Positions 9,145 through 57,557 of a DNA stretch of 64,000 nucleotides are shown here, one piece after another. Position numbers and translations under genes: made by a program. Origin of the DNA: Styela clava (taxonomy: Eukaryota); assembly GCF_964204865.1 (NCBI RefSeq), contig NC_135262.1, positions 4,278,001 to 4,342,000 of the forward strand, written 5' to 3'. Every line of letters starts with the position of its first letter. Within the stretch, counting starts at the first letter, position 1. The notes beneath the pieces were generated by a model that searched no databases, was not told the origin of the DNA, and was given only the letters and a program-made list of their open reading frames with translations.

Positions 9145-10761
9145 ATGGCGGCGGCAATGGCATTCGATGAGTACGGGAGACCGTTTATCATCGTCAGAGA
9201 TCAAGAAAGTAAATCTCGGTTAAGTGGACTGGAAGCAATTAAATCTCATATTTTAGCAGCTAAAACTGTAGCCTACACTGTCCGTACATCGCTTGGACCA
9301 AATGGCCTAGACAAGATGATGGTGTCTCCAGATGGAGAAGTCACTGTGACAAATGATGGAGCCACTATTTTAGATAAAATGGACGTTAACCACCAAATTG
9401 CTAAATTAATGGTGGAACTGTCAAAATCTCAGGATGACGAAATTGGAGATGGGACAACAGGGGTTGTTGTTCTGGCTGGGGCTTTATTGGAACATGCAGA
9501 ACAGTTGATTGATCGCGGAATTCATCCGATTCGAATTGCTGATGGTTACGAGGCAGCCATGCATGTTGCAATTAAAAAATTAGATGAAATCGCTGACGTT
9601 TTCAAAGTTGATCCAAACGATTCAGAAAATTTAGTCAGAGTTGCTATGACAACATTGGGGTCTAAAATCGTTAACAAGTGTCATCACCAATTTGCTAAAA
9701 TTGCTGTCGATGCAGTAATGGCTGTTGCAGATTTCAAACGTAAAGATGTCGATTTCGAATTGATCAAAGTAGAAGCGAAACAAGGAGGAAAATTAGAAGA
9801 CAGTCAACTCATCAAAGGTGTTCTTGTTGACAAGGATATGAGTCACCCACAGATGCCAAAAGTCATCAAAGGTGCCAAACTGGCTATCCTAACTTGTCCA
9901 TTTGAACCTCCAAAACCTAAAACCAAGCATAAGCTCGATGTTACTTCTGTGGAAGACTACAAACAGTTGCAAGAATATGAAAAAAAGAAGTTTCATGAAA
10001 TGATAAAGCAGGTGAAAGATACTGGAGCAAATTTAGCAATCTGCCAGTGGGGATTTGATGATGAAGCTAATCATTTATTACTGCAGAATGAATTGCCTGC
10101 TGTTCGATGGGTAGGAGGACCAGAAATTGAGCTGATCGCCATAGCAACTGGGGGTAGAATCGTACCTCGATTTTCAGAGCTCACTCCTGAGAAATTAGGT
10201 CATGCTGGACTTGTTCGAGAGTTGTCATTTGGAACTACGAAAGATAAAATGTTGGTTATTGAAGAATGTAAAAATACAAAAGCAGTAACCATTTTCCTTC
10301 GTGGTGGAAATAAAATGATTGTCCAAGAAGCCAAGCGTTCTGTTCATGATGCTCTGTGTGTAATTCGAAATCTTGTTCGTGATAATCGTGTTGTGTACGG
10401 AGGAGGTGCTTGTGAAATCGCCTGCGCAGTTGCAGTGTCTAAAGAAGCTGAATTAAACCCATCTTTGGAGCAATACGCTATGCGTGCCTACGTACAAGCA
10501 CTTGAGTCTGTGCCCCTTGCATTGGCAGAAAATAGTGGTTTGAATCCAATTCAGACCCTTTCTGATGTTCGTTCCAAACAAGTGAATGAAAGTAACTCGA
10601 ATCTTGGAATCGATTGTTTAAACAAAGGCACAAATGACATGAAGGAGCAACATGTTATTGAAACGCTTGTAGGAAAGAAACAACAAATCTCACTTGCAAC
10701 ACAACTTGTACGAATGATTCTGAAAATTGATGATGTCAGATCACCTGGTGAACAACAGTAG
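9145..10761 (+). CDS. CCT5: T-complex protein 1 subunit epsilon (CCT-epsilon), intronless
   Basis: 538-aa ORF starting [20 protein letters not shown], with [25 protein letters not shown] and [14 protein letters not shown], diagnostic of CCT5. Confidence 0.97.
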
Positions 10762-31732: not shown

Positions 31733-32474
31733 CTCTCCACCTACTACTGTATGGATTAAAATGGACTTTCAGAACCTTTTTAATGACTGCCTTTTTTCTT
31801 TTGTGCTTGGTTTTTTCAAACATTGCCTTCTGTGTGTGTTCTTATTGTTTGCTGTGAAACTTTTATCAATGATGCAAGCACTGTGTAGGACTGCTTTATT
31901 TTTCAACATAAACTTTTGATTGACTGAAACTTAATTTTCCTTACTAGTTGTATTTACTGCGGGTTCAGGTTGTAGATATCGGTATGTCGATATCGGTTAT
32001 CGGTCACTAGTTGGCCGATTTATCGGTATCGGTGCCAAAAAGTGATATCGGTCGAGCTCTAGGAGTACAGTTTTTGTGCAACTTGTGTAACGGTACTCAG
32101 GAAGTATAAATTCATTGAATAAACTGATGAAAGTGTAGTTACCGGTTTGATGTTTGACAATTATATTTGCACATTCTATCTAAACACGAGTATAATTAAA
32201 ATAAAACAACTTCAAGTACCTTATAAATGCAGGAGTTGTGAAAAAGTACCGTAGTGCAGTAGTGTACCGTACAGTCATACAAGTAGGATATCGTACGGTA
32301 TATTTCAGATCTTTATTCAATTAATGTTTAATTTTTACTAATTATGCAGAAATTATATTAAAGTAGCCTAGAATAAGTTGAAATCCTTATCAAATATTTA
32401 ATATTTCTAATGTGTCAGTGTTATTGGGTATAATTATTTGTAGGTACGGTGATGAATAGGTGACAGACAGAAAA

Positions 32475-33593
32475 ATGGAAACAAAAGATTTGTTAATCCT
32501 TGAACCGTTTTATGGTGGATCACACAAACAACTGATAAAAACGATAACAAATTCGTTGGATAACCACAATGTAAAATATGATTTATTCACACTACGAGCC
32601 AAGAAATGGCCTTGGAAAGCAAGATGTGGAGCTATTATGCTGTCGGAGGCCATTCCAAGAGATGTCTCATACAGAACATTATTCTGTAGTTCGGATTTGA
32701 GTCTCTCAGAATTTGTCGGAATAAGACCGGATTTTTATCACTGCCACAAGGTGGTGTATTTTCATGAAAACCAACTTGTATATCCAGTGCAGAAATCTGA
32801 AACTCTCGATTTTCAGTTTGGATATAACCAAATTTTGACAGCTCTTGCCGCAAATGAAATATATTTTAATTCTTTATACAACTTTCAATCGTTTGTTATG
32901 AATATAAATGAATTTCTACGGAGAATACCCGAATATAAACCCAAAGATATCAAAGAAAAAATAGAATCAAAAAGTAAAGTTTTACATTTTCCTCTGACAT
33001 TTAATAAAGAAATTTCAACTTTAAAAGTAAAAGAAGATTCAAATGAAAAAATACTTCACATTGTTTGGGCCCATAGATGGGAGTATGATAAAGATCCATT
33101 GACATTTTTTAAGACTTTGTTCGAGTTGCAAGAGAATGATTTCAAATTTTGCGTCTCAATTCTGGGACAGGGGTTCACCGATGTTCCGAAGGTTTTCACA
33201 GAGGGCAAGGAGAAGTTGAAAGAGGGTACAATTCAAAACTGGGGGTATGTTGAGGACAGGAACAAATATTTATCCATTTTACAATCGTGTGATGTCGCTA
33301 TATCAACAGCAATCCATGAATTCTTTGGAGTATCTATGATGGAATGTTGCTATAGTGGTTGTTATCCATTATGTCCAAATAAACTATCTTACCCAGAAAT
33401 ATATCCTTCTGAATGCCTTTACAACACGCCAAGGCAATTGTATAAAAAATTGAGAGAATTTTGTTTGAAACCCTGGCTTGCCTCAGAGTTGCATAAAAAG
33501 TTAAACATTGATTATTCAAAATATTCATGGGATAAAATGGAATCTGATTATTTAAACATTTTGAAAGTAGGATCAAAACGTCAATGTACATGA
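32475..33593 (+). CDS. GTDC1: glycosyltransferase-like domain-containing protein 1 / tRNA-queuosine alpha-mannosyltransferase, intronless CDS
   Basis: ILEPFYGGSHKQL, AKKW.W.AR, YFHENQLVYPV, W.HRWE.DK.P and STAIHEFFGVSM motifs (DUF3524 + GT-B). First in-frame ATG at 32475; the ORF track starts at an upstream GTG. Confidence 0.9.
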   Translation: METKDLLILEPFYGGSHKQLIKTITNSLDNHNVKYDLFTLRAKKWPWKARCGAIMLSEAIPRDVSYRTLFCSSDLSLSEFVGIRPDFYHCHKVVYFHENQLVYPVQKSETLDFQFGYNQILTALAANEIYFNSLYNFQSFVMNINEFLRRIPEYKPKDIKEKIESKSKVLHFPLTFNKEISTLKVKEDSNEKILHIVWAHRWEYDKDPLTFFKTLFELQENDFKFCVSILGQGFTDVPKVFTEGKEKLKEGTIQNWGYVEDRNKYLSILQSCDVAISTAIHEFFGVSMMECCYSGCYPLCPNKLSYPEIYPSECLYNTPRQLYKKLREFCLKPWLASELHKKLNIDYSKYSWDKMESDYLNILKVGSKRQCT

Positions 33594-34083: not shown

Positions 34084-35667
34084 ATGGGTGACACAATTTA
34101 TCTTTTTCGGATGGCCCTGTGGACAGCATTTGTAGGAATCACCATTCATTTGCTGGTGAAGTTATCAATATGGTTCTGGGGGCAATATGAAATCAGGAAA
34201 TGTACTTACGCATACTGGCCTTCATTGCCTTATCATTGGTTTTGGGGTCATTATCAACTTGCTGCAGTTATTCAGAAGTCACCCGAAAAAATGATTGAAT
34301 TTATCAAATCTGCCACTGATAAATTTAGTCATGGTACTGCTCTGTATGTTGGTCCACTTATAACGTACGTGCGTGTGTACCATGAGAATATACTCAAAAC
34401 AATTCTTGGCGGATCTGAGAAAAATTTCCCAAAGACTCCGACTCAATATCACGCTTTTGGTCCCTGGCTCGGAAAAGGCTTGTTAGTGCTTGATGGAAAA
34501 GAATGGCAACGACGCAGACGACTACTATCGAACTCATTCCATTTTGACATTCTGAAATCATATGCAATTAAAATGAATGAATGTTCGCAAGTTTTAGTTG
34601 ATAAATGGTCGAAAAGATTGAAAAGTCATGATGAAATGAGTGTTGAGATATTTCGTGAATTCAGCTTAATGACCATTGACGTTATCTTAAAGTGTTTAAT
34701 GGGTTTTGATTCTGAATGTCAAAAAGAAGACAGTGAGCATCAAGCTTATGTGAAAAGTATTTACAAAGTCACACGATGTGCAGCACAGCGATTTCGAGGG
34801 TCTATTTTACTGAGGTTTGATTGGATATATTATAAAACTCATGACGGGAAGGAATATTTAAAATCAAGTAAGGATGCTCGAGATTATGCCGAAAAAGTTA
34901 TCAATTTGAGAAGAAAGGAATATGCGGACGGGGCAACTATTGGCTCTAAATTAGGACTGAATAGAAAGAATAATCGGCATCATGATTTCCTTGATATACT
35001 TCTACAAGCGAAAGATTCCGATGGAAATCATTTAACGGAAAAAGAGATTTCAGATGAAGTCAATACTTTTATGTTTGAGGGTCACGATACCACAACAAGT
35101 GCAATATCATGGACTTGCTATTGCTTGGCTACGAATCCAAAACACCAAGATCTTTGTTACGATGAAATCTCAGAAATTTTAGGCGGCAAGGAAGACTTGG
35201 AATTAAATGATCTAACAAATTTGCCATATCTTACCATGTGTATAAAAGAAGCCTTACGTCTGTATCCACCCGTGCCTTCTATCACCCGGTCTCCAACATC
35301 AGATCTTAATGTTAATGGTAAAATTATAAAAAAGGGAACAGATGTTATTTTATCAATGTTAGGTGTTCACCACAACTCAAGACTTTGGCCAAATCCAGAA
35401 CTTTATGATCCGAGTCGATTTACACCCGAAAACTCATTGAAGCGTGACCCATTTTCTTACATTCCGTTTTCAGCTGGAATCCGTAACTGCATTGGCCAAA
35501 ATTTTGCGATGAATGAAATCAAAATATGCGTGGTGCATGTGCTTAGGAACTTCCATCTTGCTCTTGATGAAACGAAGCTGATCACAGAATCACTGGAGGT
35601 AATTTACAGGAGCAGAACTGGAATTCATTTAATTGTGAAGAAAAGAAGCCATAATGAACTTGAATAG
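34084..35667 (+). CDS. cytochrome P450, CYP4 clan, intronless, 527 aa
   Basis: N-terminal TM anchor, WxxxR (WQRRRR), EVNTFMFEGHDTT (CYP4 I-helix signature), KEALRLYPPVP, DPSRF and FSAGIRNCIG heme motif. Confidence 0.95.
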   Translation: MGDTIYLFRMALWTAFVGITIHLLVKLSIWFWGQYEIRKCTYAYWPSLPYHWFWGHYQLAAVIQKSPEKMIEFIKSATDKFSHGTALYVGPLITYVRVYHENILKTILGGSEKNFPKTPTQYHAFGPWLGKGLLVLDGKEWQRRRRLLSNSFHFDILKSYAIKMNECSQVLVDKWSKRLKSHDEMSVEIFREFSLMTIDVILKCLMGFDSECQKEDSEHQAYVKSIYKVTRCAAQRFRGSILLRFDWIYYKTHDGKEYLKSSKDARDYAEKVINLRRKEYADGATIGSKLGLNRKNNRHHDFLDILLQAKDSDGNHLTEKEISDEVNTFMFEGHDTTTSAISWTCYCLATNPKHQDLCYDEISEILGGKEDLELNDLTNLPYLTMCIKEALRLYPPVPSITRSPTSDLNVNGKIIKKGTDVILSMLGVHHNSRLWPNPELYDPSRFTPENSLKRDPFSYIPFSAGIRNCIGQNFAMNEIKICVVHVLRNFHLALDETKLITESLEVIYRSRTGIHLIVKKRSHNELE

Positions 35668-38684: not shown

Positions 38685-41600
38685 ATGTCTGTAAAGAAAA
38701 TTTGCTGCATTGGGGCTGGTTATGTAGGTGGACCAACATGCTCTGTGATTGCAAAAGAATGTCCCCATATTCGTGTGACAATCGTGGATATAAATGCAGA
38801 TCGTATCGCTGCCTGGAATTCAAATGAATTGCCGATTTATGAACCGGAACTGGAAGACATTGTGATGTCATGCCGAGGAAAAAATTTGTTTTTTTCAACA
38901 GAAGTAGAAAAAGAAATTATTGAAGCAGATTTAATTTTTATTTCTGTGAATACGCCAACAAAAACGTACGGTGTAGGAAAAGGAAGAGCAGCAGATCTGA
39001 AATATGTAGAAGCGTGCGCAAGGACAATTGCTGCAGTTTCAAAAAGCGATAAAATTGTCGTGGAAAAAAGCACAGTACCAGTCAAAGCAGCAGCAAGCAT
39101 CCAAAGGATTCTCGGTGCCAATATGAATTTAGATATTAAATTTCAAGTCCTTTCAAATCCTGAATTTCTTGCAGAAGGGACTGCAATTCAAAACTTGCTT
39201 CATCCAGACAGGGTTTTAATAGGTGGAGAAGAATCTAAAGCTGGGAAAAAGGCAATTGAAACCTTATCTGAGGTATATAGCAATTGGGTGCCTAAAGAAA
39301 AGATTATAACAACAAATACATGGTCTTCGGAATTATCGAAATTAGCTGCAAATGCTTTTTTAGCTCAAAGAATCAGCAGCATTAATGCTATGAGTGCAGT
39401 TTGTGAAGCCACAGGGGCTGACGTGGAAGAAGTTGCGAATGCCATAGGAATGGATACAAGAATCGGCAATAAGTTTTTGAAAGCTTCGGTCGGTTTTGGA
39501 GGAAGCTGTTTTCAGAAGGACGTGTTAAATTTAGTATATTTGTGTGAAAGTTTGAATTTACCGAAAGTAGCACAATATTGGCAACAAGTTATTGAAATCA
39601 ATAATTATCAACGCAAACGTTTTGCTAGTGGGATCATAAATTGTCTTTTCAACACTGTATCGGGAAAGAAAATAACACTGTTCGGTTTCGCTTTCAAAAA
39701 GGACACTGGAGACACCAGAGAGTCATCTGCAATCTACATTTCAAAATACCTTCTTGACGAAGGTGCAAAGTTAGCAATATACGATCCAAAAGTGTCGAGA
39801 CGACAAATTATAAGTGATTTGAGCCATCCAACCATTTCAACTCCAGAAAAGGTAGCTGAGCTTGTTACTTCAGTAACAGACCCGTACGAAGCATGCAAGG
39901 ATTCCCATGCAATTGCAGTCTGTACTGAATGGGACATGTTCAAAGACCTTGATTATAAAAGAATATTCGATTGCATGTTGAAACCGGCATTCATTTTTGA
40001 TGGTCGTGGAATTCTGCCTCATGAAGAATTGAATAGCATAGGATTTCATGTAAGTATACTTATCGCTTAGATCTGTGTAAATTTGAGTAACTATCAGGTT
40101 GAATAATTGTCTTGGTAAATCATTAAAAGTCTTGCATTGTTTAACACAGTGGTTCTCAACCATTTATGCTGTGTGACCCCTCTTCTGAAGGTATTTATCA
40201 CTTATGGTCCCATGTTTATCATTCCAGTGGTATTTATAGTGTTATGTTGACTGTTGGATCCCATTATGTTCAAACAATTCATGCTCAAAAAAGTGAAAAC
40301 ATTATGTTTAAACAATTCATGCTCAAAAAAGTGAAAACATCCTGTGAAATAATTTTATCAAGTCATGCAACTAGAAGAACAAGGAGTTTTCTTGTAAAGT
40401 GGAAAGTAAAGTCAGTTTTGGGCCCACAATTGGGGCCTCCCTCCAATGCTCTGTGGCCCCCGGATGGAACATTGATGTCTCCCAAATATTTGAACTACAA
40501 TTCAGGGACGTTCTAACCGGTCAATTTGATTGAAAATTTAATATATAAAATATTTTAAATTCCCGATTATCAAAATAATTTAGAATAGTTATATATATTA
40601 AAATCATTACAGCAAATGAAGTCTCACAGTCCGATCAGAAAAGCTCTCTTTCAATTTTTGAAAATAATAAAAAAAAAAAAAGATTTGTGACTCTATTTGG
40701 AATATATACAATATTCAATGATATTATTTTATAATCTGTTTGGGAATGATTGTTCTTCCACCTGCAGCCACCCCGCTGCAGCTTTTTGAATAAGAGTTAT
40801 GCTATTCATGCGTCGTATTATTGACCCTGCTTTGATCAATACATATTCAACGATATTATTTTCTAGAAAAAATATCTGTTATGTTGCAAAAAGACATGTT
40901 TTCTCGATTAACTTATCAAGCATTTACGATTATATATATACAGCTATTATTATTCAAATCACGAAGGTTATTTTCGAAGGCTTATTAAATTTTTCTTTTA
41001 TCTTGGCTCAATAAATTGCACTTCTGTGGATTTAAATAATCCTTATTAGAAATTGACCACCGATCTACTTTAGTAAATTTAATCCTTGTTTTAATATTTT
41101 ATTAATTAAAATTGTGATTTATTCCACATCGCCCTCGGTCATGCCTAAGATTGTGATCATAATATATCATTAAATGAGTTATGTTTATAAAAACCATTAA
41201 GGAGTGGCCACCTGATAATAACCATGGAATGCAATATTGTAAACTAAAATAGAAAGAGAGCTTCCTAGAAATTGGTCATTTCCAGACTCTAAATATTTTG
41301 AAATCAAAATACCAAGGACTTATTTTGTCAATTATCTTTGCCAATGTTTAGATTCCAGTGTCTGTTATTGTTTTTAGGGGGAGCAGTTAATACCTGTTCA
41401 GACTAACAGTCCCCACAGTGTGATTTGTATTCAGTAAAATAAATTTATTGTGTAAGGAACAGTGATGAGGAAATTTCTTGCCAATTCTACTAAATAAAAT
41501 TAATTTTGATACATCAAAATATGCCTTATTTACTTCTTAATGCTTTATTTTTCAGGAGCGACATTTGACATTATTCATATTGAAATTTGTTAAACTCAAG

Positions 41601-49287: not shown

Positions 49288-50463
49288 TAGGGCCCGACCG
49301 ATACTGCCTTTTTGAACCGATACCGATACTGCTAGTTTTCCAAAACTAGGCCGATAAGCCGATAACGATGTTTCTTCACATAAAAAAATTGCTACAAGTA
49401 ACAAACAACACTCTGAGAATTCTGTGTTTTTCTTGCAAAAGAAATAAATGTTGAAACTCATGCAATGATTATAAAAAAATGCAAATTTGTGCATCACTAA
49501 GTTTTTTTAAGAATAGCGATTTTCAACGCCAGCATTTTCTGTCACGAGAAGAGTCATTATTTTCTGGCTCACAAGTTCATATATTTGTGGCAGCATTTCT
49601 GTTCTGAAATACTTCTCAGTCTTTAGGGCGTAGCGAGGTTCAATGGTTTCTATTAGCCTGCGGAATCCATCATCTTGCACTATTGCAAATGGCCTGTTGT
49701 CAGTGGCTATCATCTCCATTATTATTTTATCAAGTGATTTCGTTCTTGCGTCATTTCCATGCCATTTATTAAATTTATCCATTATGTGTTCCCATGAAGG
49801 TTGCCGATTAAACTGGGAAGCTTCAGCTGGCCTTTTTCGCGTTAACTGCGTCTGCGAAATCTCATCATACTTGCTCTTGTGTTTCGATCTGAGATGACTC
49901 CACAAATTACTGGTGTTTTTCTTTTTGGAATCGGCGGAACCTTGACTTAACAATGATGAGCATTTTTTACAAAGTACACCATCACTGTGGCATACAAAGT
50001 ATTCCCATACTTTGCTCTTACCGCTAGAACCAGCCATCTATAACATACCAATACAAGAAGTTAAACAATACCTTCAACGACTAAAGCGCAAGGGAAATCA
50101 AGCGCCGTGTAAACTACGCGAAAATTCTCTATCTAGCGTATATTATTTGACACAAATAAGCCGTTCACGTGTTCTATTGCTTCGATTTGTGAGCCACCAC
50201 GCTGCAAACTTGCTTGCAAAGTGTGAAATCCCGTGTCGCAATCGTCCGTGAAACCGCTTTTGATAAGAGAGAAATAGAAATAGTGAAGAAAAAGAGTTTC
50301 ACGCAGAACCGCTCTCGAATTAAACAAGCGATAAAACTGCTTTCCCGGCGCAATTTTGACACTTTGGCAGTCACGTGATTAGCCGATAACTATCGGTAAA
50401 ATTAGCCGATACCGATAGTTCAAAATTTGTGAAAAACAAGGCCGATATATCGGTCGGGCCCTA
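49288..50463 (-). mobile_element. internally deleted hAT element with BED-finger ORF
   Basis: CTTTCTAT|TAGGGCCCGACCGATA ... TATCGGTCGGGCCCTA|CTTTCTAT: perfect 16-bp TIRs and 8-bp TSD; CCGATA subterminal repeats. Confidence 0.92.
49507..50037 (-). CDS. truncated ZBED-type hAT transposase N-terminus (BED zinc finger + DNA-binding region; no DDE core)
   Basis: KSKVWEYF...CKKC...NTSNLWSHLRSKH (BED), and MIATDNRPFAIVQDDGFRRLI..IEPRY, typical of ZBED4-like transposases. Confidence 0.85.
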   Translation of the reverse strand: MAGSSGKSKVWEYFVCHSDGVLCKKCSSLLSQGSADSKKKNTSNLWSHLRSKHKSKYDEISQTQLTRKRPAEASQFNRQPSWEHIMDKFNKWHGNDARTKSLDKIIMEMIATDNRPFAIVQDDGFRRLIETIEPRYALKTEKYFRTEMLPQIYELVSQKIMTLLVTENAGVENRYS

Positions 50464-50810
50464 CTTTCTATAGTAATCTTATCGGTTTTTCTCTCCCCTG
50501 GGATAAATATGTAAATCCTATTCTAATTACTATGTTATGTAGATGTGAGTCATGTGACTCATATTTGAAATGTTAAACCTTATTTGACTGTTTGAAGTTT
50601 TGGTAACCTTTTTGAATTTCTGTCCTGTGTATTATCCATACTACTGAGGGAGTTAAAAAATTATTATACTTATGGTAATTAGAAAGAAGATTTCTATAAT
50701 GCCAATTGCCAAAATATTCACAAATATTTCTTGATTGAGAAACAATTTTATCAACCTTTAAATCTGTTTCAATATGCATATCAGGTTAAGTTATATAAAT
50801 CAGTATAGCT

Positions 50811-53800
50811 ATGTCGGTGACGGAGCAGGACAAACCAGAGGATTCTTTGTCTCAAGATGGCGTTTATGTAATGTCGGCCTGGGGAAAACGACAAATAGTT
50901 TTGAATGGATATCTGTACCGAAAACAAAAAGTTATAAAACATAAATCTTATTGGAATTGTGTTTCTGAAGCAAAATATAAATGCAAGGCAAAAATTCATG
51001 TCAGCGAGGATGGAGCGGCTACACCAACCATAACACGAGCACTTGAAAATCACTGCCATGATCAACTTTTACATAAGATAGAAGAGAGACTAGCCGTCAG
51101 CAGGTTAATATTTTATGTTCCTAATTATATAAGAAAATATATAAGTTTTCTCTTTATTTAAATCACTGGTTCTTAACCGCCGGTCCGCGGACTGGTGCCG
51201 GTCCGCGGCAACCTTGCTGCCAGTCCGCCAAATATTTTCCAATATTAATATATTATAAGCAAATTGCAAAATACAGAGTGTTGACGGCATGTCCGTTAGT
51301 TTTTTTTTTTCTTCTAATTATTGATTCGTAGTACCGCAGTCTAACTGTTGGACCAGTAGTGGGCAAGATTTTCAGACCGGGGCCAACAATTTTGCCCATC
51401 TAGACTGGCGGACCATGGAAGTATGAAGTAAAATGTGAAAATTACATTTATGGACAATATTTGCAATGCTACAAAAGCAAAAGTAGAAAACGATAAGCCC
51501 CATGCCAAAACTAAATTTTATCGCAATCCCAACAAATTCCTTGAGCTATTTTTTGCTGAAACAGCAAAATTTGGATTTAGTTTGGTTGTAACACCAACAG
51601 GCGGGCCAGATTGAATAACCCAACAGGCCGATTCGGCCCGCGGGCCGTAGTTTACCCATGCCTGTGTTAGACTCGAACAACCAAACTTGGTGAGATGTCC
51701 TTTGCCAATTTCAAGCCCTGAACTACTTGATGTTCGTTAAGTCTATGACCTCATAACGGCGACTAGCGTAATAACGGAGGAGTTTGATAGCACATTCCGT
51801 GTTTGCCTGAAAATAAGACTGGGTTATATTTCAATATTTTTCTGAAAAAATAACACTGGGGCTTGTTTTCGGGGGATGTCTTATATTTTTATTTAATAAA
51901 AACAAAATTCAAAAGTAAAGAATTACGATAATTTCGTATATATATATATAAAGTATGAAAACAGATATCCATTTACTTATAAATATCACGTTTTTATTCA
52001 AAACAACTGCGACGTGTAGGAGAGATTTCTTGATATCGACTAGGTCAAAAAAAAGTTTGCGTTATTGACTAGATCCCATTTTAATAAGGGGGGGGGGCTT
52101 TTATTAAAATATTGCTTAAAATTCAGGCTAGGTCTTTTTTCCATGGTATGTCTCAATTTCGGGGAAACATGTTTCACGTTTCAAAAGAAACCCAGCGGTG
52201 AAAACCAATTTAGTGGTGTTTACAGGAAGAGACTGCTACTTCAACTTTATAACATACCCCGAAACGACCTTTCATGTTGCAGCAAAATTGACATGGATCA
52301 TGCGTAAACGAGCAAAAATCGAGAGGGATATTTTATTGAGCACTATAATAACTATTTGGAGCTAGGTTTCACTATTGCTCCCAGCAGCGAAAAAGTACCG
52401 CTTCCTATGTGCCTAGTCTGCGCCAAAATTCTTTCAAACGGCGCAATGAAACCCGCAAAGCTAACGAAATCGTGTGGAAGTCAACGCTCTACTTTGCCTT
52501 GCACAAACTTCATTAGAACTACGTTCAACACGTATAATATCAAAAAGACAGCAGCAAATTTCTCATTGAATTGGATTGTCTTCTTTTGCACCGCCTACTT
52601 TTGTCGTAATCGCATTCTTTTGATTATGTTTTGTGTTCATGACATTTTTGGTTAATTTTGAAGGTCCGCCAGTCCGCGAAATTTTTTTTGAAATTTTACG
52701 GTCCCCGAACTGAAAAAGGTTGAGAACCTCTGATTTAAACCGTTTCCCAATAGTTGAGAAATTCCGCTCCAGAACAAAGTTTTGTCAATCTTGTGGAGGA
52801 ATTTTGCATTGGCTTTGTATTCGCTGTACATTTTTCTAATTATGTTGGAATTATGGGATAGAGATCTGAGATATACTTTAAAAAAAACATCTTTGTACTT
52901 CTGAAAATAGCTTAATGTCTAATTGGTTGCTCATCAATTCATTTTAGACTGAAAATGAAAGTTTTAGAATCTGGGGAACCTGTGGCGAAAGCAATGAGAA
53001 AATTTGTTATTGAAGAACCAATTATTGCTGAGAAAGGAGAAGAGAAAGTACGATCTGCTATGAGAAAAGTGAGAAGAAGAGTTAGACAATCTCAGGTTTG
53101 TTTCTCTTTCGACAATTTATTTTCAAATTCACGGAAGAATTAAGGAGTTTTGTTGATAAAGTATTCAATGCTTTGTACCATTGCTGTATCATCATCGCAA
53201 AACATTTTAATTCTTTTTTTAGAGTAAAGTCCACATTGGTCCTAATTCTCTTGCTTGAATGAAAAATCTAGATGTGAATTTTTCAAATGGTCTGGAGAAG
53301 CAGTCATTCATAGAATAAGTTTATTGGCTTTATGCCAGTTATCTGGTTGAATATTGTTCACAATTTATTGCTCTCTACTCTTTTGATAGTGGTTTCCACA
53401 AGGCCAAATCTAACAAAAAGTTTCATACCGTTAGAATCATTACCATTAAAAAATATACGGCAAAAATTGTTTATTCAATCAGTTGGCTTGATTAATTACT
53501 AATAGATATCATTGCGTTTTGGTAAATCATGTTCTCTGAAATGTCCATATAATACATTCGCATTTCGACTTATATCTTATTATTTATTGTGTGTTCCCCT
53601 CAAAGATGGCAACAATTAATTATAACGATATGATGTTCAAGTAAATGTTTTGATATTTTTGCATGTTTTATGTGACAGTTACAAGTGACTTGCATCAGGA
53701 AATGCATGAGGTGACATGTTGACACTCACCAGTCATTGATTGAGAATTGATCATAAAATCTTCTCTTTGAGTTTCCTTTTCATTCAGTCTGTTTGTAGCC

Positions 53801-55538
53801 TGCACTGCAGCAAGGCAGAAGTTTTCATTTGCAGAAAATCAAATTTGAAAGTCTTTTGTGAAGCTTAATAAAGTAAAAATAACTTAGAAATTGAGATTCT
53901 AAAAGGTCTTACTTTAGTAAGAATAAAGATATCTTGATAATGGATATTGTAAAAACAGTTTTAGTTACAATAAGTTTGTAGCCTATTCAATATCTATTTA
54001 CCCAGATGTTTGAATCTTTTAACGTAATTTTCAATGATGCGGAATTTATTAAACATGTTTTTGGGGTCAGATTTTGCTTCTATTATCCAATTATTTCATA
54101 TGCTCTAGATTGATGCGATTCACTATTGTTTCCTTTTAATTAGATTGAGTGGATATGCTGGACTAGTGGTCAAAGAGTTTGAATTAATTGTGTTGGCATC
54201 GTAGATTGAAAATCTTGTGTTCAAATCTCATGCTCACCGCTTCAAAAAAAATTAGTAATGAATTTGGATGGATAATGCCAAACTGGAGTTACGGCTTTTC
54301 AAATATAAGAGTTCTTCGCATAGTAGTGGTTTCTCACGCAGAGTTTTGTTTGGAATTAAAGACAATTAAAATTAATTATCAAAACATCTGTTCAATACAG
54401 TATTGAATATCTTTGAATCCATTATGTTTGTTTGAAATTCATAAAATGTCAATGGTATAAAGTTTAAACAATGAAATGTTTCGTTTTACAGAGGTTATCA
54501 CTGGAAAACAGTGAGGAATCAAACAACACAAAAAAGAAATCTAGCAAAAGTAAAAAAGACGCCACTCTTGTCTATGATTGGGAGGGTATCAGTAATTCCC
54601 CATCCTTTATGAGAAGTGGATTTATGCAAAATCTTGGTTCAAAATATAAAAATTCCTCAAGTGAATCTTTGATTAAATCTGACAATTTAAACAGCGAATC
54701 AATATCGAACTTACCAAATTTGCAAGTTGAAATACAAGTACCAGAACCATATTCCGAGAACGATACGAACATGAGTGAATTAAGCGCATTCGAAGGAAGT
54801 TTGCAAGGCAAAGTAATCTTAGTCGCTGGTGCATCAAGTGGAATCGGGAAGGCTATTGCGGAAGCTGTTGCAAGAGCGGGTGCACACGTATGTGTTGGCG
54901 CACGAAGACAAGATAAACTTGCTGAAGTCTGTGAAAAAATTGACTCTGAAGGTGGTATTGTACACCAATATGAATTGGACGTAACGGATCGGGCTCAATT
55001 TTCTGAAGTTGTGAAAACTATTGAGGAACTTATGGGCCCGATTGATATTTTAATAAACAATGCTGGATGCATGTTTTACACGCACATGCACAATGCAATG
55101 ATGGATGATTGGGATAAAATGATTAATATTAATTGTCGTGGCGTAACTAACGGTATTGGGTGTGTTCTACCTGGAATGGTAGAAAGGGGGAAAGGTCATA
55201 TTGTTAACACATCATCAGATGCAGGCAGGAGAGGGTTTCCTGGTTTAGCGGTATACTCCGCAACAAAATTTTTTGTAGAAGGACTTTCTCAATCTTTAAG
55301 GCAAGAAGTAAAAGACAAGGGGGTCAGAGTAACTTGTATTCAACCCGGTGACGTTGCGACTGAAATTGGGAATTATACGAGAGATCTGGATGCCCAAGTG
55401 CAATACAATACAATGGGTTCAGCAAGTAAAATCCTTGACCCTGAAGACATTGGAAGGGCTGTCTTATATGCCCTTACTCAGCCAGATCATGTAGGTGTAA
55501 ATGAAATTCTTATAGAGCCCACAGAAGCTCCAATCTAA
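50811..55538 (+). CDS. FLYWCH zinc finger - short-chain dehydrogenase/reductase fusion protein, 495 aa; exons 50811-51103, 52948-53095, 54492-55538
   Basis: Exon 1 GKRQIVLNGYLY...YWNC...KCKAKI...NHCH (FLYWCH). AG|GT..AG|A phase-2 and CAG|GT..CAG|AGG phase-0 junctions keep one frame. Exon 3 GASSGIG, ARR, NNAG, SSDAG and YSATK (classical NADP(H) SDR). The SDR itself is near certain; the fusion is inferred. Confidence 0.7.
51164..52732 (+). mobile_element. Charlie/Buster-type hAT remnant in intron 1 of the fusion gene, with nested MITEs (51354-51664 hAT; about 51798-52170 Tc2-like)
   Basis: ATTTAAAT|CACTGGTTCTTAACC ... GGTTGAGAACCTCTG|ATTTAAAC. Transposase remnant YLELGF...PMCLVCAKILSNGAMKPAKL (about 52350-52465). 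The inner hAT has TSD TGTTGGAC/TGTTAGAC. Confidence 0.8.
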
Positions 55539-57557
55539 TTTATGGTATTTGACAACCTTTCCGTATCTGAGCGTTTGTTTTTCAGATATGTTTTTAAGTT
55601 TACTTAGTCCAATGTATGCTGTTCCTGCCAGACTAAAATCAAGCCGAAAGGCTGTTTCAAGCATTAGTTGAAAATAATATTAAATTCTGGGTGCCAATAA
55701 TATTGTGTTTTGTGACAAAATCATGATACATAAACTGCATGAACTGGTATATAAATCGTGTTTTCTTTTGTTAACTAAACTGCTTGTATATAGATTGTGA
55801 TAGCCAAATGTTTTTTATGCATGGAATATATTTGTGAGGTCAACTTTTCGCAGTTACATATAGACGATAAATTATTCCAGAATTTTAATAAAAAGTGTGT
55901 TTTTGATTTTAGCGCTTGTGGGAATTATGGCATACCGGTACTTGAATTATTTTATTTACTGATTTCCAACAAATGTTAAACTGACTTATATCATATAATC
56001 AGGGAAATCACTACGAAATGGTTAAATTAGATGTCAGTTTACGTATAGTCCAATGTATTTTTCTGGTTTTGCTTTGAAATCGTGATATAATGTGGTCTAT
56101 TTTCAAACTACTTGGTAAATTGTTTTTGATGTACGTAGTCCAATTTTGATTTTTAAGCTGTTTTTCTTCAGCAATTATTCAGTTTACTCCAGATCCCAAG
56201 TTTTTATGAATGGAGGAATATTGAATAATGTTTATTCAGAAGATTGATTAGTTATTAAAGTTTTAAAATATATATCATACCAAACTAATGTTTCGTCTCT
56301 TAAGAAAATACTTTTGTAGTGTTATTATTGTATTTTGAGGCTTTCATAATTATGTTCATTCATGGAATACCTTCTAATAAAAGCATTATTAAATGCATTT
56401 GTGTAGTTTGTAGGAATTATATCTAAACATTACTGTAACTACATTTTTAGCACTTGACCTTAGAGATGGGATAGGGAATTTTTTCATTATTTTAATGAAT
56501 TAGAAAATTATAAATTGAAAAAAAAAGGATGGGCATGAAATGGAGTTGCAAAACTTTCTGCCAGCTCCATTTACAACAAAAATCCATGGCTTTAGTCCCG
56601 TCCGAATACTCCAGTAACAAGGCAGCATTTACCTGATTAAGTGCGCCTGACTTGGTTTCTAGTTAATACTGGACTGTGGTTTGCTATGGAATGATTCATC
56701 TTATTTTCAATCTCAGGGTTTATATAGAAATTCTATCAGCTTGGTAAACCAAGTATTGCAAAATGGATCTTCAAATATTGTACAATCATTTCTACCTTTT
56801 TTTCTTATCTCCAAGTTATTTATTCCTCACATTCTTGGTGCAGATAAAAATAGTAGGCTATTCAAATTATCATTCAGTAGATGCTTTTCATTCTCAAATT
56901 AATTGCATAGACCTGAGACAATTACAAAGTTATCTATACCCATACTTGTCCTGGACATACAACCGGACAAGAAACAGTCTACCATAGGATTAAGCCATTT
57001 CATCAGCCTTGCTCAGGATAAATATAAAAAACCTATCTTGATTGTCATTAGCAAATATGCTATACATGTTGATTATATTCTTATATTATAAGCGGTAGTA
57101 ATGAAAATTTGATTAAGTTATTATAAAACAACGATTACGGTACTTGTAATATGAACGAGTGTTTTCTTCTAACATTGATTTGGTTTTGACGTGTATGGGC
57201 CAAATATCAAAGTTTTTTATTGAAAAATTTTGAGTTTTGTTTTCCAATAATCCAGGCCTCCTTGTAAACATAGGCCATTGCTTCAAAAACGTTTTTGATC
57301 TATTCAAGCATTATTAAAATTATCATCATTCATTTCTCATTTTCGTTTATTTTTACATATTGTTGAATCACTCAACTCATCAAAACAGTTTTTTTGGGGG
57401 ATTCGTTACCATGGGAATCGAAATCTTCATCAAAAATTGTTTTTGTGATAATCTGTTATATGTTAAACTATTATTAATTGAATTCTTTCAATGTAGATTA
57501 ATTGATAGTTTAATTAACTGTATTCGCTGACCCATGAAGGTCATTGAATGCAGCAAT

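Follow-up and report, generated by a model that had tools for sequence, protein, structure and literature searches.

The stretch of Styela clava DNA analysed here (the window: 64,000 nt of NC_135262.1, positions 4,278,001 to 4,342,000, from which positions are counted below unless a contig is named) carries on its forward strand a three-exon gene that joins a FLYWCH zinc finger to a short-chain dehydrogenase/reductase (SDR). This fusion gene lies on contig C17 of the searched genome. Exon boundaries were read directly from the letters, and a local script was used for joining the exons in frame and for assigning single nucleotide polymorphisms (SNPs) to classes. The joined segments 50811–51103, 52948–53095 and 54492–55538 make up 1488 nt, with 495 codons and a single terminal stop. 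The initial annotation had proposed that open reading frame (ORF) fragments are joined here through GT–AG introns of phase 2 and then phase 0 into one 495-residue frame, which both the sequence and the script confirm.

The start codon is the ATG at 50811, with an in-frame TAA upstream at 50796–50798. Another ATG further upstream, at 50774, is out of frame and is polymorphic, with G>A at 50776. The 5' untranslated region (UTR) occupies at least 50720–50810, a contig of sequencing run X1 (record 2) starting at 50720. The coding part of exon 1 (50811–51103, residues 1–97 plus 2 nt) ends at an AG/GT donor in phase 2 (51103/51104), and the FLYWCH zinc finger occupies 50865–51059 (residues 19–83). 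Intron 1 (51104–52947) is 1844 nt long, has GT and AG ends and is rich in high-copy repeats. Exon 2 (52948–53095, residues 98–147) follows the acceptor at 52947/52948; it is helical, ends in the basic sequence RKVRRRVR (residues 137–144), and has a CAG/GT donor in phase 0 at 53095/53096. Intron 2 (53096–54491), also with GT and AG ends, is 1396 nt long and single-copy, its acceptor being at 54491/54492.

Exon 3 has two parts. The first, 54492–54809 (residues 148–253), encodes a disordered linker rich in Ser, Asn and Lys. It holds a second basic cluster (159–168), a conserved LQVEIQVPE (224–232) and a conserved Met241. The second part, 54810–55535 (residues 254–495), is an intronless, classical SDR of the NADP(H) type. 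The stop codon (55536–55538) and the 3' UTR, with an AATAAA at 55887–55892, extend over 55536–55900, and RNA contigs continue to 55900, the end of the region examined. One contig from run X3 (580 nt, depth 26) spans 55811 to about 56390, beyond the AATAAA; it comes either from an isoform with a longer 3' UTR or from a transcript next to this one.

Family and structure searches used the exons singly. Where the whole protein was needed, the database protein P0001 was taken; three of its residues, two of them in the linker and the third in the SDR, are not those of the window translation. Exon 1 matches the Pfam family FLYWCH (PF04500) with an E value of 1.5e-14 and 54.4 bits against a cut-off of 23.6, over profile positions 1–62 of 62. 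This full-length match, together with the W-C...C...HxH residues (W48, C50, C58 and H81xH83), which are kept in the orthologue P0002, places the finger in the FLYWCH family. Exon 1 also matches PDB 2RPR, human FLYWCH1 (E 2.9e-5). Exon 2 matched no Pfam family. Exon 3 matches adh_short (PF00106) with an E value of 2e-59 and 200.8 bits, and carries the motifs of a classical SDR: GASSGIG at 260, ARR at 284–286, NNAG at 336, N361, Ser388 and Y402xxxK406. The residue before GASSGIG is Ala259 here and Thr in P0002. The ARR is conserved among YdfG-like relatives; basic residues after strand 2 mark a preference for NADP(H), this being a mark in the sequence only.

Among solved structures, compared by sequence, the SDR is closest to clavaldehyde dehydrogenase 2JAH (E 1.5e-52), with the YdfG-type 3ASU/3ASV and sulfoacetaldehyde reductase 6IXJ also matched, in a range to 6.6e-34. 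The NmrA profile gave an E value of 0.0073 on the SDR, under the Pfam cut-off. An AlphaFold2 model of P0001, made with alignment A2, predicts a beta-sheet domain at residues 14–83 (pLDDT 74–92), helices at 87–162 (pLDDT 56–79), no structure at 161–241 (pLDDT below 50) and a Rossmann fold at 254–490 (pLDDT mostly above 90). The architecture given in the initial annotation, in which a FLYWCH finger and a basic, helical stretch precede a linker and an intact SDR of the NADP type, is thus borne out by Pfam, by the motifs and by AlphaFold2.

Contigs of three runs from three separate studies (X1, X2 and X3) and DNA run X10 were compared with 50400–55900. The first exon joint is found in contigs of X1, X2 and X3 at 51101/52946, which with GT and AG ends and the cut placed 2 nt rightward is 51103/52948. 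The second is aligned at 53091/54488 in the same three runs, with a skip of the predicted 1396 nt, and is the canonical 53095/54492 if the sequenced animals have A for T at 53092, a synonymous change. A single X1 contig of 1601 nt covers 50720–55560 and passes through all three exons. Neither joint is present in DNA run X10. Depth over intron 2 is zero in X2 and X3 and is even, at about 10, in X10. It is very likely that X1, X2 and X3 are RNA, because their coverage is exon-only and their GT–AG joints are absent from the DNA run.

The gene is therefore spliced and transcribed as one mRNA. It had been allowed for in the initial annotation that no transcripts link exons 1 and 2 to exon 3, and this is contradicted by the presence of both joints in contigs from three studies. 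Nine small runs of the same organism hold about one quarter of the sampled words, as they should if they contain exons alone, and four further runs hold 68–79%. It is almost certain that the three-exon fusion gene is real and expressed. One X3 contig leaves exon 2 at 53006 and continues for at least 255 letters that are absent from the window; this could be another isoform, an insertion haplotype or a chimeric contig.

The product is already present in the databases. P0001 is XP_039255726, 'uncharacterized protein LOC120332525 [Styela clava]', of 495 aa, which was 99% identical in the exon 3 search and whose record bears precomputed FLYWCH and SDR domains. The gene model is thus known as an automatic RefSeq prediction (LOC120332525). 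The literature searched contained no paper joining FLYWCH with Styela and none describing a FLYWCH-SDR protein; papers mentioning FLYWCH alongside short-chain dehydrogenase were unrelated to the S. clava fusion gene. Among about 5.8 billion clustered proteins, the FLYWCH-SDR pairing occurs in two clusters, those of P0001 and P0002. P0002 has 499 aa and an identical architecture, and is known from an assembled public run. It comes from another species, since no S. clava locus is closer than 74% to the SDR.

Searching with residues 1–147 of P0001 returned P0001 and P0002 only, and exon 1 alone had no match among short proteins. An exhaustive FLYWCH search gave 195 matches, none above 45% identity beyond the cluster of P0001 itself, and the 10 of these 195 that were domain-scanned contained no SDR. 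The initial annotation knew of no FLYWCH-SDR architecture. This stands in that the searches found the pairing in P0001 and P0002 only, but the RefSeq model already existed and the Drosophila protein GFZF provides a precedent for joining FLYWCH to an enzyme.

Mutator-like element (MULE) transposases also carry FLYWCH fingers, and the locus could be a Pack-MULE-like capture, a chimeric transcript or an assembly artefact rather than a host gene. A high-copy FLYWCH-MULE family is indeed present in the genome: there are at least 86 genomic FLYWCH matches, most of which belong to a high-copy family with FLYWCH plus MULE transposase, such as L021. In the 377-Mb genome the FLYWCH exon of the fusion gene matches itself and one other place at 29% identity, and the SDR has no other locus above 74% identity. 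DNA depth in X10 over the exons and intron 2 is about 10, equal to that of the flanks. The finger exon is therefore single-copy and lies outside any high-copy MULE, contrary to a possibility that the initial annotation had left standing. Tblastn with FLYWCH-MULE proteins matched only the finger in the window, which holds no remnant of a MULE core. Pfam found no MULE catalytic core (PF10551) in exons 1 to 3, so that the gene does not belong with the MULE transposases. No terminal inverted repeats (TIRs) flank the gene, the sole pair being 23 nt at 78%, which looks like chance. Identical joints in three studies and an orthologue in a second species also speak against an artefact. Capture by a transposon, or an artefact, is most improbable as an account of this locus.

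Depth in intron 1 peaks at 51504–52055 and 52424–52791 in every run. It climbs to hundreds to thousands, the flanks having about 10, in keeping with the description of this intron in the initial annotation as full of decayed transposons. Just upstream of the fusion gene, on the opposite strand, is a BED zinc-finger ORF resembling the N-terminus of a hAT transposase (176 aa, 49507–50037, minus strand). Adjoining it, at 50400–50583, is a repeat of very high copy number, over which all runs reach depths in the thousands. Elsewhere in the genome, members of the FLYWCH-MULE family are found at L021:1489–2844 (C13, plus strand) and about 80 other places, and many have long open frames of 289–454 aa, a sign that Mutator-like elements may have been active recently in S. 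clava or may still be so.

The closest proteins with a single N-terminal FLYWCH finger, at 38–45% identity, include the FLYWCH-MULE proteins P0188 and P0172 and the FLYWCH-BTB protein P0178. When their first 150–170 residues are aligned, the fusion proteins, P0188, P0203 and the S. clava MULE L021 line up in one order, in which the finger and a helix are followed, after about 30 residues, by a basic (I/M)R(R/K)V(R/K)R; beyond the finger the likeness is short and statistically weak. What follows the basic motif is the catalytic core in the transposases and the exon 2/3 boundary in the fusion gene. A FLYWCH paralogue on contig C1 (L030:5361–6491; C1:17595361–17596491, plus strand), which is the single further genomic match of exon 1, has the same two-exon layout. 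Its exon 1 ends at AG/GT in phase 2 at the aligned position, and its second exon closes with AAMRRVRRKK, after which there is a possible phase-0 donor. The closest database relative of this paralogue is the FLYWCH-BTB protein P0178, at 42% over exon 1; downstream exons, such as the BTB of P0178, were not found within about 14 kb.

Exons 1 and 2 of the fusion gene seem to have arisen when a FLYWCH gene with introns and a MULE ancestor was duplicated, and not to have been taken straight from an element without introns. Because the place and phase of the intron are common to the host-like C1 paralogue, the donor was possibly an already domesticated gene. The likeness to Mutator transposases proposed in the initial annotation is plausible but indirect: the N-terminus is collinear with those of FLYWCH-MULE proteins up to the basic motif, but, given the intron that the C1 paralogue also has, its immediate source may not have been a transposon.

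Within the genome, the SDR has its nearest relatives in a tandem pair of C1 loci (about 14.895 and 14.925 Mb), with 67–78% identity exon by exon. Both encode AMP-binding, PP-binding and NAD_binding_4 domains upstream of adh_short, and are therefore A-T-R1-R2 genes of the ATRR type. These ATRR-like genes (L027, L028 and L029; C1:14894500–14933999, minus strand) lie about 29 kb apart. In the second copy, one R2 exon contains an odd stretch; damage to the gene or an artefact at an exon boundary may explain it. Other top matches (P0007, P0012, P0018 and P0020) are C-terminal fragments with an R1 family domain or R1-like sequence before the SDR. Two Phytophthora proteins, P0003 and P0004 (508 and 412 aa), are longer and carry the same YdfG-like SDR as their C-terminal part. 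One of them is named 'bZIP transcription factor 1' by one source, and they may be another fusion of a regulator with an SDR or a gene-model artefact.

In a maximum likelihood tree of 33 SDR domains, P0001 and P0002 pair with a support of 100/96 and join the stand-alone, 251-aa P0005 (96/91). The sister group of the fusion proteins and P0005 consists of the two S. clava ATRR R2 domains and P0006 (98/89), all of them inside a clade supported at 98/96. This clade and the 67–78% identity to the parental R2 exons make the SDR one of the R2 type. Exons 1 to 3 hold only FLYWCH and adh_short, with no A, T or R1; the gene is therefore derived from R2 and is not an ATRR. An origin of the linker from the region between R1 and R2 was also considered, and was rejected, as there is no similarity to that region upstream of residue 251.

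Four introns interrupt R2 in each of the C1 genes, and none interrupts the fusion SDR. The SDR thus has two features of a retrogene, the absence of all parental introns and a different locus (C17 rather than C1). Since all four R2 introns are missing, retroposition is likely, and the simplest reading, held loosely, is that the SDR would be a processed partial copy of an ATRR-like mRNA. A poly(A) remnant or target-site duplication would not be expected to survive at about 70–75% protein identity. Taken together, it is likely that the two halves have the origins described here, the N-terminus being of the FLYWCH/MULE type and the SDR being an ATRR R2.

Conservation between P0001 and P0002 differs along the protein. 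The FLYWCH domain is 63% identical and exon 2 is 69% identical, both without gaps, the linker is 41% identical with 10 gapped positions, and the SDR is 84% identical without gaps. The zinc-finger motif residues, the basic RKV(R/K)RRVR, LQVEIQVPE and Met241 are all kept in P0002. Polymorphism was taken from the listed differences of the RNA-run animals from the reference, 18 further differences being unlisted. Among those listed, exons 1 and 2 have five synonymous and no non-synonymous SNPs, the linker has three of each, and the SDR has 10 synonymous and no non-synonymous SNPs. From these comparisons FLYWCH, exon 2 and the SDR look constrained, and the linker, which is fast-evolving, much less so. 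Purifying selection on the FLYWCH exon, as the initial annotation had supposed, agrees with its ungapped conservation in P0002 and with the listed exon 1–2 SNPs being synonymous throughout.

These comparisons bear on whether the finger matters at all. The reductase alone might be of consequence, with the FLYWCH exons having donated only a promoter, 5' end and start codon to an SDR copy that lacked a promoter. It is common for retrocopies to take up exons lying upstream, and the conserved Met241 is about where the stand-alone P0005 begins, so that an SDR-only product is conceivable. Against this, exons 1 and 2 are better conserved between the species than the gapped linker, the finger motif residues have been retained, the listed SNPs of exons 1 and 2 leave the protein unchanged, and all three spanning contigs include exon 1. 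A purely promoter-donating role for the N-terminal exons is therefore improbable.

The gene itself was probably born by exon shuffling. The R2 part of an ATRR-like gene would have been duplicated to another chromosome, likely by retroposition, and this copy, placed after exons 1 and 2 of a FLYWCH gene, would have become the terminal exon. The donor FLYWCH gene would be a paralogue of the gene at C1:17.595 Mb and ultimately of the MULE type. In the protein, the basic clusters at 137–144 and 159–168 may take it to the nucleus, where the module of FLYWCH plus helix may bind DNA, like its counterparts in MULE transposases and FLYWCH transcription factors, or else a partner in chromatin. NADPH would be bound by the SDR, which is probably oligomeric, as its relatives are. 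The SDR would then either reduce a small aldehyde akin to betaine aldehyde in place, much as the excised R2 of fungal ATRR works without its other domains, or report the NADP(H) state to a regulatory complex. As a whole, with gene, origin and mechanism blended, this is the best explanation and is somewhat favoured. Its mechanistic part, a nuclear reductase tethered to DNA much as the initial annotation had suggested, is proposed tentatively, as a possibility that may well prove wrong.

Between these two activities, catalysis is favoured because the whole catalytic set is kept in both species. The SDR could instead be a non-catalytic NADP(H) sensor, in which case a transcription regulator would follow the NADPH/NADP+ ratio with no turnover of substrate. 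A domain of the DNA-binding type is paired here with a Rossmann fold, as would suit a sensor. Branch sums from the common node are about 0.52 changes per site for the fusion lineage and about 0.22 for the ATRR R2 lineage, and the longer branches of the fusions are compatible with a change of role. However, N361, S388, Y402, K406 and NNAG are kept in both species; a sensor would not need them, though their retention is compatible with one, and the substrate-side region is 84% identical. A sensor without catalysis is thus unlikely.

A more specific form of the tethered-reductase mechanism would be a sequence-specific, DNA-bound aldehyde reductase, of the betaine-aldehyde/choline type, or NADPH-state sensor, brought by a MULE-derived FLYWCH module to defined genomic sites, possibly relics of MULE ends. 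Such an arrangement is quite doubtful. Were it true, ascidian gene regulation would be directly coupled to osmolyte or one-carbon metabolism, and the protein would be the first transcription-factor-like protein made from a reductase domain like those of non-ribosomal peptide synthetases (NRPS).

Several points weigh against the explanation favoured here. Neither 5' ends nor isoform ratios can be read from contigs, nor would these reveal a trans-spliced mRNA with the SDR only, and an additional mRNA of this last kind is conceivable. Exon 2 matches transposase N-termini over a short stretch, with an E value of 0.001 against a tiny set, and the deep nodes of the SDR tree are unresolved. FLYWCH domains can mediate protein contacts too. 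Four other conserved genes of the window, all on the forward strand, likewise each consist of one unbroken ORF: a TCP-1/CCT chaperonin subunit (538 aa, 9145–10761), a QTMAN-like tRNA-queuosine mannosyltransferase (377 aa, 32460–33593), a cytochrome P450 (527 aa, 34084–35667) and a UDP-glucose dehydrogenase (461 aa, 38685–40070). In most animals, as far as is known, genes of these kinds have many introns. Loss of introns, or replacement of genes by retrogenes, may therefore be widespread in the S. clava genome, and with four intronless neighbours the missing introns of the SDR are therefore weak evidence for retroposition.

The fusion gene represents a clean and datable gene birth by exon shuffling in a chordate relative, in which a DNA-binding module of the transposase type and a single NRPS-like enzyme domain were combined and both were then kept under selection. 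If the protein binds DNA and reduces or senses an aldehyde or NADPH, it would be a tractable model for the coupling of metabolism to chromatin; ascidians allow transgenesis, and an assay is established for the fungal homologue of the enzyme half. If its function is mundane, it is still a well-documented chimeric gene specific to a lineage.

To our knowledge, fusions of a DNA-binding domain with a metabolic enzyme are rare, GFZF and SETMAR being the familiar cases. The bacterial enzymes 2JAH, YdfG (3ASU/3ASV, of the E. coli type) and 6IXJ have the same motifs as the S. clava SDR and are NADPH-dependent reductases of small aldehydes or hydroxy acids; they differ in being stand-alone proteins of about 250 aa without an N-terminal extension. 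CtBP, NmrA and HSCARG are Rossmann-fold regulators that sense NAD(P) and have no DNA-binding domain of their own. They have in common with the fusion a dinucleotide-binding fold, used in gene regulation, and so offer an analogy for a sensor role, with no detectable relationship beyond the fold.

Fungal ATRR is an NRPS-like glycine betaine reductase with the order A-T-R1-R2, the excised R2 of which alone reduces betaine aldehyde to choline (bioRxiv 10.1101/559534), and ATRR-like genes are also found in animals (PMC11050029). The fusion SDR is of this YdfG-like R2 type and is closest to the R2 domains of its own species. It differs from ATRR in lacking the adenylation, carrier and R1 domains, in its intronless R2 and in its zinc-finger N-terminus.

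Host-transposase fusions such as SETMAR, GTF2IRD2, PGBD3-CSB and KRABINER (bioRxiv 10.1101/2020.05.07.082677) likewise have a transposase-type DNA-binding module spliced to a host domain, and are single-copy, expressed and under purifying selection. The S. clava gene has the same characteristics, being single-copy, without TIRs, spliced to a host domain and expressed, with a transposase-type part that is constrained as judged from identity to P0002 and from SNPs. The listed fusions are from vertebrates, whereas this one is from a tunicate and has a metabolic SDR as the host part; among them SETMAR is the only one with an enzyme partner. A further difference is that the FLYWCH exons of S. clava share their introns with a host-like paralogue, and the donor may already have been domesticated.

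The nearest precedent for a FLYWCH-enzyme protein is GFZF, which acts in the nucleus as a transcription cofactor. It is a Drosophila protein described as a GST-containing FLYWCH zinc-finger protein (Dai et al. 2004, as cited in PMC10027918). Like the S. clava product, it has FLYWCH and the fold of a small-molecule enzyme in one polypeptide, a likeness of architecture alone. GFZF has several fingers and a GST and belongs to an insect, and its enzyme half is unrelated to that of the S. clava protein, which combines one finger with an SDR.

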